This document shows, piece after piece, positions 20,544 through 29,200 of a DNA stretch of 64,000 nucleotides (positions are counted from its first letter, which is position 1; the number at the start of each line of letters is the position of its first letter). Made by a program: the position numbers and the translations under genes. This DNA comes from Leucoraja ocellata. Taxonomy: Eukaryota. The notes below the pieces were generated by a model. It ran no database searches. It saw only the letters and a program-made list of their open reading frames with translations, and was not told where the DNA came from. The stretch covers positions 62,001-126,000 of the forward strand of contig JAWMAR010001700.1 of NCBI GenBank assembly GCA_036785375.1. Direction: 5' to 3'.

Positions 20544-20597
20544 TCAAAGGCCGAGCATCAGGAAGGCCTCGCTGAAGTCTTCAAATTCATCCAATGG
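20544..20597 (-). CDS. AICDA: AID-like last coding exon (nuclear export signal)
   Basis: catttgcAG|CCATTGGAT...[23 protein letters not shown] versus AID PLYEVDDLRDAFRTLGL*. Confidence 0.92.
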   Translation of the reverse strand, partial: PLDEFEDFSEAFLMLGL

Positions 20598-26500: not shown

Positions 26501-29200
26501 GACAGAGCTCTAGGGGCTAGTAGAATCAAGGGATATGGGCAGAAGGCAGGCACGGGTTATTGATAGGGAAGATCAGCCATGATCACAATGAATGGCGGTG
26601 CTGGCTCGAAGGCCCGAATGGCCTCCTCCTGCACATATTTTTCTATGTTTCTATGGGACAGTGTTTCTTGGAAAGGCTATGAAGTTGAAGTGCTTCAACC
26701 AGACTGGGATCAAAGCCTTTGGAACAGCAAGTTTGACTGGTTTCTGAAGAACACCATAGGGACACTCACTACTCCTCATGTTTTGGCTGCATTTCAGCCC
26801 GACACATCTGAATGTTTGCAAATTGCTAAGTGGCAGTTTTGATCTTCCTAGTGCTTGTAACAGTAATTGTTTTAACTGCGAATGTGTTATTTACAGCAAC
26901 TCCATTAAGATTTTGATTTGTATTGGGAACTTTTGTCGTGTCACTCTTGATATTTGGTCACGGTCGCTAGGGGGGAGGATATTCCCTGTTGGTTTGCTCC
27001 TGGGGCCATTCACTGGGTCCAGGCAGCAGGCTGTGGACGGTTATGCCCGAGGCGACTGTCTGTCCCTTGTTTGGTCTATTGCTCACTGGAGAGGGAACAC
27101 ACGTTGCCCACGGGGACCTTCAGTGACCGCTGGTCGCCACGGGGGTCCAGTCCATCGTCCTTTCCCATTTGACCATTGATTGCTTGATGTTTGTAACTGG
27201 TATTCGGCAGTATTGATCCTTCCACAACGTGCTTTGATTACGAAGTAAAGTGGGAATTAAATCTATTTGGGAAATAAAAAAGAGTGAAGCTCCTCCCTTC
27301 TCGCCTTTGGCCCAGCGGGCGGTCGTGAAGTGGGACAGGGACTTCCTCTTTTTGTTCCTCGGGGGCAGGGAGAGAAAGAGGGAGAGAAAATGTGAAAGTC
27401 CCAGCAAAGAGCCGACTCCTCCAGACGTAAGCGCGCACGAACATACATCGCCCGGGGAGAGTGAATGAACAAGAGAGCGTGGAGCTTCTCCCTCCCTCCT
27501 CCCTTGGACCAGCGGGCGTTAGTGTGCAGAAACTCCCTCTTGCTCATCAGGCAGCGAGGGAGAGAGGAGAGGGCGGGGAGGCGGCGTGATGGGACAGGGA
27601 AAAATAAAGAGTGAAACTCTACGCGGAGACGTGTTGCCGTCTGTCAGCAACGTACCTCAGCGTGAACGTCCCTGCGCACCGTCCTGTCTCACCCCAACTC
27701 CCCTCTAACCCCACCGATGCATCTGTCTCTCTCTCCTTCCCTGCCCTCCATCTTTGCACACGCTCTCTCTTCCCACTCCCTCATTCCAACCACCCTCTAC
27801 CCCCACCGTCTCCCCGGCTCCTCTCTCTCTCTCTCTCTCTCTCCTCCCCCCCCCTCTCTCCACCACTCACCCTCCCCGCTCTCTCCCACCCACAGCTCCC
27901 ATCTCTCTCCCTCCCCTCTACCTCTCGCTCTCTCTCCCCTCTCTCTCGCCGCCCTCTCTCTCTCACCCCCTCTCTCTCACCCCCTTCCTTCTCCCCCTCT
28001 CTCACCCCCTTCATTCTCCCCTCACCCCACTCCCCCTCTCCTTCCCTTCCCTCCCCCCCTTCCCTTCTCTCCCCCTACCCACCTCCCTTCCGCATTCCAC
28101 CCCCTTCCATTCTCCTTCCCCTACACTCCCTCTCCCCCTCCCTCTCCCCCCACTCCCTCTCCCCCTCCCTCTCCCCTCTCCCCCGCTCCCTCTCTCCCCT
28201 CCCTCTCCCCCCGCTCCCTCTCCCCCTCCCTCTCCCCTCCCTCTCCCCCTCCCTCTCACCCGCACCCACTCCCCCCTCCATCTCTCCCCTCCCTCTCCCC
28301 CGCTCCCTCTCTCCCCTCCCTCTCCCCTCTCCCCCTCCCCTCTACCCCCTCCTCCCCCTCCCTTGCCACCCCTCCTACCTTCTTACTGCAGTTAGTGCAG
28401 TCCCTCGCCTTCATTTTCCCTCTCCCTTTCTCCACTCTCACTTTTCCTCATTCTCTGCTTTCTCTCTTCCCTTGTTTCGCTCTCTCTCAAACACCCACAT
28501 TCTGTTTCTCTCTCCCTCTCTCTCTTTCACACACAAGGGCCGCTGAGGTCTATCAACCAAAGATCCTATAGCAGAGCTCTGCTATAGGATTTTTGCTATC
28601 AACAGTGCAGTGATAATCTCATCTGATAATCTCCCCTCTCACTGTAGTTAGTCTGAAATCCCTTACCATATCCCTATCTCCTCCATTCTCTGCTGCCACT
28701 CCCACTCTCTCTCCCCTTTTTTCCCCCTATCTCCTTCCTTCCCGTTCTCTCCCTATCTGTCTCCCACGCCTTCCTTCTGTTTTTCTTTCTCTGCTTCTCT
28801 CTCTCCCTTCCTTCCTCTCCTACACTCTCTCCCTTTCATCTCTCTCTCTCTCTCCATTATCTGCGTCCCTCTCACTCCCCCCTCTTCCCAGTCTTTCTCA
28901 TCTCCCCTCTCTCTCTCTCTCTTCTGTCTCCCACTATCACCCACTGTCTCCCTGTACACAGCCACATACATGCATCTTGTCTCCCCTCTCTTCCCACCAT
29001 TCTCTGCATCCCTCTCACTCCCCCCTCTTCCCAGTCTTTCTCATCTCCCCTCTCTCTCTCCTACCTCCACCCCCCCTCACTCTCTTTCTTTCTCTCCCTC
29101 TTTCTCTTCTTCTATCCTCTCTCTCTCTGTCTCTCCCTGTTCTTCTCTCCCCTCTCTCCTTTTGTATCCCTCGTTCCCTTCTGCCCTCCCACCTCTCCAT
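20544..29200 (-). CDS. AICDA: AID/APOBEC-family cytidine deaminase, AID-like (4 coding exons, 198 aa): [198 protein letters not shown]
   Basis: Exons of 8+419+116+54 nt give 597 nt, all introns GT-AG with the phases of human AICDA (2,1,0). Zinc motif HxE...SWSPCxxC is intact. Ungapped alignment to AID along the full length, including the C-terminal NES. Ortholog versus paralog is unresolved. Confidence 0.9.
21130..22440 (-). mobile_element. CR1 fragments in the last intron of the AID-like gene
   Basis: [19 protein letters not shown] motif. Confidence 0.85.
22563..22678 (-). CDS. AICDA: AID-like coding exon 3 (equivalent to human exon 4)
   Basis: ctgtccccAG|ATTATTCC...CTACAG|GTctgt. 116 nt. 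[10 protein letters not shown]...[23 protein letters not shown] matches AID DYFYCWNTFV...NSVRLSRQLRRILL. Confidence 0.93.
22700..23628. repeat. Polypyrimidine/polypurine low-complexity intron
   Basis: C/T-dominated plus strand, so the gene's sense strand is G-rich. Confidence 0.85.
23631..24049 (-). CDS. AICDA: AID-like coding exon 2 (equivalent to human exons 2+3; catalytic domain)
   Basis: Acceptor ctctccccatAG|CTGTCTGATG and donor TACACAG|GTacgg. 419 nt. Encodes [44 protein letters not shown] and GLRRL. Confidence 0.95.
24478..24545 (-). pseudogene. Truncated copy 1 of AID-like exon-2 5' end
   Basis: Translates [14 protein letters not shown], homologous to [17 protein letters not shown]. 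Confidence 0.75.
24660..26652 (+). mobile_element. CR1 fragments in intron 1 (about 24660-25645 old; about 26078-26652 younger)
   Basis: [21 protein letters not shown] and LVRPHLEYC motifs. Confidence 0.8.
27284..27460 (-). pseudogene. Truncated copy 2 of AID-like exon-2 5' end with upstream intron segment
   Basis: Translates [18 protein letters not shown]. The flanking gtaagcgcgcacgaacatacat matches gtaagcgcgcaccaacatacat next to the real exon (about 24122). Confidence 0.85.
27479..27700 (-). pseudogene. Truncated copy 3 of AID-like exon-2 5' end with upstream intron segment
   Basis: Translates [18 protein letters not shown]. The acceptor AG is mutated to CG. The flank aagagtgaaactc is shared with the real exon. 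Confidence 0.85.
27720..29190. repeat. Polypyrimidine/polypurine low-complexity tract in intron 1
   Basis: (ctctcccc)n-type sequence. Confidence 0.9.
28558..28595. mobile_element. 38-bp palindromic miniature DNA transposon with 8-bp TSD
   Basis: ctatcaac | caaagatcctatagcagag ctctgctataggatttttg | ctatcaac. Confidence 0.85.
29193..29200 (-). CDS. AICDA: AID-like coding exon 1 (ATGGAGAG|gt), candidate
   Basis: The minus strand reads ...ctcaagcaATGGAGAG|GTGGGA, paralleling human ATGGACAG|GT. It joins in frame to exon 2 (M-E-S-C-L-M). An 8-nt exon is weak evidence by itself. Confidence 0.65.

Follow-up and report, generated by a model that had tools for sequence, protein, structure and literature searches.

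Identity and structure of the AID-like gene

The question raised by the locus described here is whether a strongly diverged AID-like gene of the skate Leucoraja ocellata is an independent AID paralog that has acquired a new role, or the AID gene of skates itself. The gene is located on the minus strand of a 64,000-nt stretch of genomic DNA (contig JAWMAR010001700.1, positions 62,001 to 126,000; hereafter the window, in which all coordinates are given). AID usually counts among the best-conserved components of adaptive immunity in jawed vertebrates, and the immunology of cartilaginous fishes has the little skate as a standard model; a full-text literature search found no paper on skate AID or its divergence. 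The comparisons presented below make it probable that the locus represents the single orthologous AICDA gene of skates, most likely encoding an active single-stranded DNA cytosine deaminase, which passed through a burst of amino acid replacement on the skate stem.

Translations and database searches were carried out exon by exon. In Pfam, exon 2 matched NAD1 (3.8e-37), APOBEC_N (8.5e-36) and APOBEC2 (1.2e-35), and exon 3 matched APOBEC_C (1.2e-9). The best solved structure was human AID (5w0z, PDB 5W0Z family, 6e-46), with APOBEC3G behind at 2.9e-41. A search of a collection of 5.8 billion proteins with exon 2 returned 38 matches among 78 candidates, and the top match was 100% identical: XP_055521283.1 (P0001), a protein of 193 residues annotated as 'single-stranded DNA cytosine deaminase [Leucoraja erinacea]'. 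The translations of exons 2 to 4 equal this protein exactly, and all named full-length top matches are AIDs. The 90% cluster of P0001 also contains XP_032870578.1 of the thorny skate Amblyraja radiata, the NCBI label of which carries the suffix '-like'. Judged by these matches, the gene is already annotated publicly as an AICDA-type deaminase and is probably not a new paralog.

Reading of the sequence yielded an AID-like frame that is open over 198 codons and divided into four coding exons by introns with GT..AG borders. The coding parts sum to 8+419+116+51 = 594 nt, or 198 codons with zero stops, and none of the in-frame pieces CLMTKKK...VMGYT (139 residues), YSYCW...RRILQ (38 residues) and the last piece of 17 residues contains a stop. 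The gene is composed as follows:

29200-29193, minus strand: coding part of candidate exon 1, ATGGAGAG, encoding Met-Glu-Ser (first two bases of the Ser codon), with the donor gt at 29192-29191
24050..29192, minus strand: intron 1, 5,143 nt, with CT/GA-rich low complexity, fragments of long interspersed nuclear elements (LINEs) and three decayed copies of the 5' end of exon 2
24049-23631, minus strand: exon 2, 419 nt, ag before and gt after, residues 3-142 including HAE and PCAQC
22679..23630, minus strand: intron 2, 952 nt, GC content 0.61
22678-22563, minus strand: exon 3, 116 nt, bordered by ag and gt, DYSYCW...RRILQ with the basic helix-6 patch
20598..22562, minus strand: intron 3, 1,965 nt, with an abundant interspersed repeat at about 21400-22450
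20597-20544, minus strand: coding part of exon 4, following ag, 17 codons and TGA, with the C-terminal export-signal region

Candidate exon 1 joined to exon 2 would read MESCLM, which is identical to the first six residues of nurse-shark AID (P0187), and a single match to the motif ATGGASAGGT exists in the window, on the strand of the gene at 29191-29200. Two observations qualify this assignment: at least one match to the motif occurred in 35 of 100 whole-window shuffles, and the NCBI model of 193 residues does without candidate exon 1 and starts at a Met inside exon 2. Candidate exon 1 is therefore likely, though unproven, to be genuine as judged from its sequence. Accordingly, the intact four-exon protein of 198 residues described in the initial annotation stands for exons 2 to 4, with exon 1 retained as a candidate.

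The human exons 2 and 3 correspond to one skate exon of 419 nt that has no intervening intron. A structure of five exons, reported in the excerpts of PMC9795746 as conserved for AICDA across the vertebrates examined there, is thus absent from the skate gene. The whale-shark gene model (P0007) is likewise uninterrupted from the exon-2 Met to ...MTYK and then continues past the same donor position; by this comparison, the fused exon 2 is probably common to sharks and not specific to skates. The whale-shark model hints that the five-exon structure is probably not a defining feature of AID outside the bony vertebrates, to which it may perhaps be restricted.

Copy number and phylogenetic position

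A duplicate with a new role would be expected beside a canonical AID, but the protein collection, although it has named NCBI entries for Leucoraja erinacea as well as Amblyraja radiata, yielded a single skate cluster. A search through a word index of the annotated proteins with the stingray AID (198-residue isoform) returned 92 matches among 297 candidates, which comprised shark, tetrapod and bony-fish AIDs; skates were represented by the P0001 cluster with Leucoraja and Amblyraja at 64% identity, and no second, canonical skate AID was present among these matches. HMMER, run exhaustively over 1.84 billion representatives, detected 329 proteins at E-values up to 0.001. In its top ranks, non-skate AIDs follow directly below P0001, with no second skate copy: P0001 is followed by P0039 and then by P0040, which is the Atlantic stingray (Hypanus sabinus) AID and shares a cluster with that of the manta. 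Within the 64-kb window, tblastn with stingray and nurse-shark AID detected the three large exons and three decayed N-terminal fragments, the rest being noise.

Some candidates for closer relatives were rejected. P0039 is a pangolin mis-prediction that contains exon 2 twice, and it was omitted from the tree described below. P0034-P0038, considered as skate paralogs, are short unnamed Logan/ENA fragments consisting of an exon-2-type piece that ends after LRNK or LRNQ and is followed by non-AID residues.

A tree was calculated under the LG+C20+F+G4 model from 26 rows, comprising 23 AIDs hand-picked across the vertebrate classes and three APOBEC3-type rows as outgroup; fragments and mis-joined models were left out, and the rows include no APOBEC2 or lamprey CDA. 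The AIDs of cartilaginous fishes form a clade (support 100/99), in which the skate pair (100/100) groups with the stingray pair as its sister (96/93), matching the species tree. A count of strict shared derived residues gave four for skate and ray (V29, G118, P121, H122), two for ray and shark, and one for skate and shark. The AIDs of Hypanus sabinus (XP_059816583.1) and Mobula birostris (XP_072106424.1), which share these batoid-only residues (loop 7 of the form '..G..PHP') with skates, are the sister group of the skate protein in the best tree, and Q89 is common to the skate and Hypanus AIDs. As far as the sequences indicate, the tree favours one-to-one orthology, though leaving it unproven.

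Accelerated amino acid replacement in the skate stem lineage

The skate protein is nevertheless far from ordinary in its divergence. Its identity to human-type AID had been estimated by hand at about 56%, a value that was borne out by the alignment. The pairwise identities are as follows:

Skate AID and Homininae AID (P0192): 56.0% over 193 aligned columns
Skate AID and stingray AID: 64.2%
Skate AID and catshark AID: 64.2%
Stingray AID and catshark AID: 76.3%
Stingray AID and Homininae AID: 66.5%

Accordingly, the skate protein is farther from its nearest relative than the stingray AID is from that of mammals. Homininae AID shares 65.5-69% identity with shark and stingray AIDs, and the AIDs of stingrays and sharks are 75-76% identical to each other; the skate protein reaches 61% with nurse-shark AID and 35-40% with the three APOBEC3-type rows. 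Since four teleost AIDs share 59-62% identity with Homininae AID, the divergence of the skate protein is only somewhat beyond that of teleosts.

The excess of change falls on the stem. This branch measures 0.57 changes per column in skates versus 0.12 in stingrays, whereas the skate tip branches measure 0.021 and 0, and the proteins of Leucoraja and Amblyraja differ at four of 193 residues (97.9% identity). Tajima relative-rate tests with three shark outgroups gave ratios of skate-unique to stingray-unique changes of 35:13 (p 0.0015), 37:14 and 34:14, and those with the Homininae and turtle outgroups gave 30:9 and 30:11, with p-values of 0.0008 to 0.004 in all five tests. The skate excess is thus about 2.7-fold by unique changes and about 4-5-fold by maximum-likelihood branch length. 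Moreover, the 21 non-skate AIDs all agree at 61 of the 193 columns, and skates replaced seven of these (K34E, F61L, Y76L, W80L, F81Y, F145S and L172I); the corresponding numbers for the other seven clades are 0, 1, 0, 0, 2, 0 and 1. The alternative offered by the initial annotation, an unusually fast-evolving true AID, is supported by the branch lengths, the Tajima counts and the replacements at invariant columns. In the proteins searched and in the best tree, the gene behaves as a sole one-to-one ortholog, and its branch length is not an ordinary one.

The residues 59-105 around the zinc site contain 17 of the 35 skate-unique changes, invariant columns were changed about half as often as variable ones (7/61 versus 28/132), and in five of the seven invariant columns that were hit, one hydrophobic residue was exchanged for another. 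The lower rate at invariant columns together with the hydrophobic exchanges has the look of a core that was repacked while still constrained, and less that of unchecked decay.

Residues with assigned functions

All four primary catalytic residues (H56, E58, C87, C90) are kept, with HAE at positions 56-58 and SWSPCAQC at 83-90. Furthermore, R24, T27, N51, W84-S85-P86, Y114, C116, RRDS38 and R112 are present, as are the helix-6 arginines R171, R174, R177 and R178 and the C-terminal residues F193, L196 and L198, so that the retained catalytic residues, PKA site, basic patch and export motif reported initially were all recovered, and the three changed core segments quoted with them read as stated. 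We take S38, T140, helix 6 and the export motif to have the roles assigned to them in AID. T140 is replaced by G in skates only.

An excerpt of PMC8201067 lists 21 'secondary catalytic' residues of human AID. With respect to this list, the skate residue is found in at least one other cartilaginous-fish AID at 18 of the 21 positions. The skate-only changes are K52I and S82A, to which C55S is added at a position that is variable in the group, and R25H, N53P, V57A, F115Y and E122Q/H are group-wide in cartilaginous fishes.

Two apparent peculiarities of the skate protein were dismissed. The HAE form of the zinc motif, initially regarded as a likeness to APOBEC3, was found in all eight cartilaginous-fish AIDs examined; it represents the normal state in this group and is uninformative on a turn towards APOBEC3. 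Loop 7 was mostly rejected as a skate-specific rewrite, since G118, P121 and H122 are common to stingrays and skates alone add T120G and E124G.

In comparison with other vertebrate AIDs (human; nurse shark, UXO99697.1), the skate protein has in common the length of 198 codons, colinear and free of internal gaps when aligned with cartilaginous fishes, together with the zinc site H-x-E / SWSPC-x-x-C, the hydrophobic export motif at the C-terminus and the phases of the last two introns. It differs from them by the seven replaced invariant sites, K52I, S/T82A, T140G and the missing intron between exons 2 and 3.

Proposed history and alternative explanations

The most economical account of the sequences is an intact one-to-one AICDA ortholog that is conserved between two skate genera. 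In lymphocytes, the encoded enzyme would convert C to U in transcribed immunoglobulin variable genes and in this way start somatic hypermutation; if the proposal made for sharks is extended, T-cell-receptor variable genes would be targets as well. After the split of skates and stingrays, the protein would have undergone the burst of replacement, including F61L, Y76L, W80L and F81Y at hydrophobic positions that are unchanged in every other AID sampled, and near stasis would have followed since the divergence of Leucoraja and Amblyraja. We infer that the enzyme is active and that the recent stasis reflects purifying selection; the burst presumably altered a quantitative property, such as stability or temperature optimum, catalytic rate or regulation, and not the type of reaction.

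Several observations weigh against this account. The approximately unbiased (AU) test fails to reject a placement of the skates outside sharks and stingrays (log-likelihood difference 5.3, p 0.22), and long-branch effects or an older duplicate are compatible with the tree when it is taken alone. The copy number is based on annotated proteomes searched via the word index. The neighbours of the gene are histone genes and transposon fragments. Expression was looked for in sequencing reads placed on 4,301 letters (20400-24700) from four runs at 90% likeness: in two raw RNA runs, of which 6% and 25% were read and the tissues are unrecorded, depth was zero at 23568-23999 and in exon 4 and at most 0.16 in the exon-3 bin, and none of the 15 joints listed out of 291 fits intron 2 or 3. 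Finally, an intact motif is no proof of activity, as exemplified by the AID of the Gadidae, which the excerpts of PMC9795746 describe as full-length and yet nearly inactive by enzymology, in company with the loss of MHC II and CD4.

The cod family also provides the model for an explanation in which the skate gene is a true AICDA, the activity of which was lowered or altered by the burst, leaving a lethargic enzyme, one with a colder optimum or one with a changed target preference. This is unlikely, but it has several points in its favour: the seven replaced invariant positions include K34E and F145S, K52I, S82A and T140G come in addition, and the missing AID reads in the two RNA runs are weakly in line with it. 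W80, which is replaced by L in skates, is presumably the site of the human hyper-IgM mutation W80R, and skates of this family are cold-water animals. AID orthologs vary widely in rate and temperature optimum (PMC8201067), and the Gadidae enzyme is nearly inactive with all hallmark motifs present, in a lineage that likewise departed from the vertebrate norm (PMC9795746); its inactivity was demonstrated enzymologically. The small difference between the two skate genera argues for present constraint, however, and the mainly hydrophobic exchanges, the spared invariant columns and the intact catalytic and zinc residues with SWSPC, R24, T27, N51, Y114 and C116 speak against this explanation as well. 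An adaptive version of the history is held tentatively, as a possibility that falls short of being probable: at the origin of the Rajidae, remodelling of the sole AID (residues 59-105, K34E, K52I, T140G and F145S) would have changed a working property, which may be the temperature optimum or stability in cold water, the catalytic rate, the regulation or the choice of targets. Hypothetically, the burst could be linked to cold water, or the remodelling could have gone in step with heavy use of germline-joined light-chain genes, as the skate sigma-2 light-chain genes are called 'all joined in skates' in an excerpt of PMC5192425. The burst may have been adaptive, may reflect a transient loosening of constraint, or may have been accompanied by reduced activity, as the excerpts of PMC9795746 describe for the cod family.

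The remaining explanations separate the burst from the function of the enzyme or the gene from its ancestral locus. The replacements could have been driven without adaptation, by GC-biased gene conversion or by mutation that locally favours GC. Third codon positions have a GC content (GC3) of 0.81 in exon 2, 0.58 in exon 3, 0.65 in exon 4 and 0.75 overall, compared with a GC content of 0.61 in intron 2 and 0.47 in the window, and the GARP/FYMINK ratio of the skate protein (1.51) is the top value of the 26 rows, the stingrays having 1.2, three full-length shark AIDs 0.8-0.9 and the partial Chiloscyllium sequence 1.14. Such a drive is nonetheless improbable, since the GC content of codon positions 1 and 2 at the 35 skate-unique replacements went up in 15 cases, down in 13 and stayed the same in seven; without a GC direction in the replacements, GC-biased gene conversion is not a sufficient explanation on the present data. 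It is quite improbable, too, that a relocated copy, partly processed or transposed, took over from the ancestral locus and that its new context released the burst. Histone genes and retroelement fragments on both sides, the incomplete exon-2 copies within intron 1 as a sign of local rearrangement, and four coding exons in place of the five given for the examined vertebrates in the excerpts of PMC9795746 would fit such an event, but the three remaining introns lie at the expected protein positions and the fused exon is probably not specific to skates, as the whale-shark model suggests. The neofunctionalised paralog beside a canonical AID elsewhere in the genome, with which this analysis began, has become very improbable indeed. 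It could draw on the long branch and the replaced core residues, on the placement permitted by the AU test, on the unusual setting between histone genes on a 316-kb contig and on the '-like' in the name of the Amblyraja protein. With the AU test as a caveat, it was rejected on the grounds of the single skate cluster among the annotated proteins searched and in the top HMMER ranks, the agreement of the best tree with the species tree, the shared batoid residues and the absence of a second copy from the window. Tetrapod APOBEC3 and APOBEC1, which are derived from AID, resemble the skate protein in the deaminase fold family and in the HAE form of the motif, but they coexist with a canonical AID, a situation that was not found for skates among the annotated proteins searched.

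As a fast-evolving ortholog, skate AID would serve as a natural experiment that shows where the enzyme tolerates change and how such changes affect rate, temperature dependence and targeting. It is also a warning that nurse-shark AID is no stand-in for 'the' cartilaginous-fish enzyme. If the adaptive remodelling were true, skates would join the cod family as a second, independent lineage with a re-tuning of AID itself and not only of its targets.

Sequencing reads at the locus

A search of sequencing runs with exon 2 listed 24 runs, and none of the holders is recorded as RNA. In run X1, from a relative that is about 94% alike, contigs cover 23726-24049 and 22580-22737; the latter contig includes 59 nt of intron 2, so that X1 is probably DNA or unspliced RNA. 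One contig fit of X1 ends exactly where exon 2 begins (24049), leaving 45 letters unplaced, and is ambiguous in this respect. The differences listed for the placed reads concern positions of the intron-3 repeat only, with no exon substitutions among them.

The intron-3 repeat (about 21400-22450) contains a reverse-transcriptase-like open reading frame (ORF) at 21940-22473 and reached a summed depth of about 1-2 million in DNA contigs. Both RNA runs contain thousands of its reads, and it belongs to a very abundant transcribed family that is present in at least four organisms.

Genomic setting

Relative to the window, exon 2 and intron 2 together form an island of high GC content at the catalytic exon. 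The decayed copies in intron 1 combine the initial 50-60 nt of exon 2 with part of the upstream intron; they contain insertions and deletions, and at least one acceptor has been lost. The following copies were detected by tblastn:

24489..24542, minus strand: copy B of the exon-2 5' end, family D6, 66%, 18 residues readable
27261..27350, minus strand: copy C of the exon-2 5' end, 83%
27500..27562, minus strand: copy D of the exon-2 5' end, 62%, acceptor ag replaced

Around the gene, two ORFs of the H2B type, one of H3 and one of H1 are supported by Pfam, and two H4-like ORFs, identical over the H4 core, were assigned to H4 by eye and are below the Pfam Histone cut-off. The six histone ORFs, assigned by Pfam or by eye, are located at:

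3384-3839, minus strand
9983-10300, plus strand
43582-44037, plus strand
52026-52439, minus strand
53252-53569, minus strand
54237-55013, minus strand

Other ORFs inspected near the gene are reverse-transcriptase-like by eye, and one fragment of an RNase H/integrase is supported by Pfam. No usual AICDA neighbour was recognised in the 64-kb window. Human AICDA presumably shares 12p with a small histone cluster, and the linkage of AID and histone genes might perhaps be old.

The region 32600-36600 contains ORFs with the reiterated motif KGTTYCKWWLGCFGLKLKG on both strands and is probably a tandem or satellite-like array. Runs of N occur at 31030-31229 (200 letters) and 62575-62879 (305 letters). 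The AID genes of elasmobranchs are found on short contigs, with 316 kb in Leucoraja, 573 kb in Hypanus, 49 kb in Mobula and 82 kb in Heterodontus, which hints at a repeat-rich AID region that is hard to assemble across the group.

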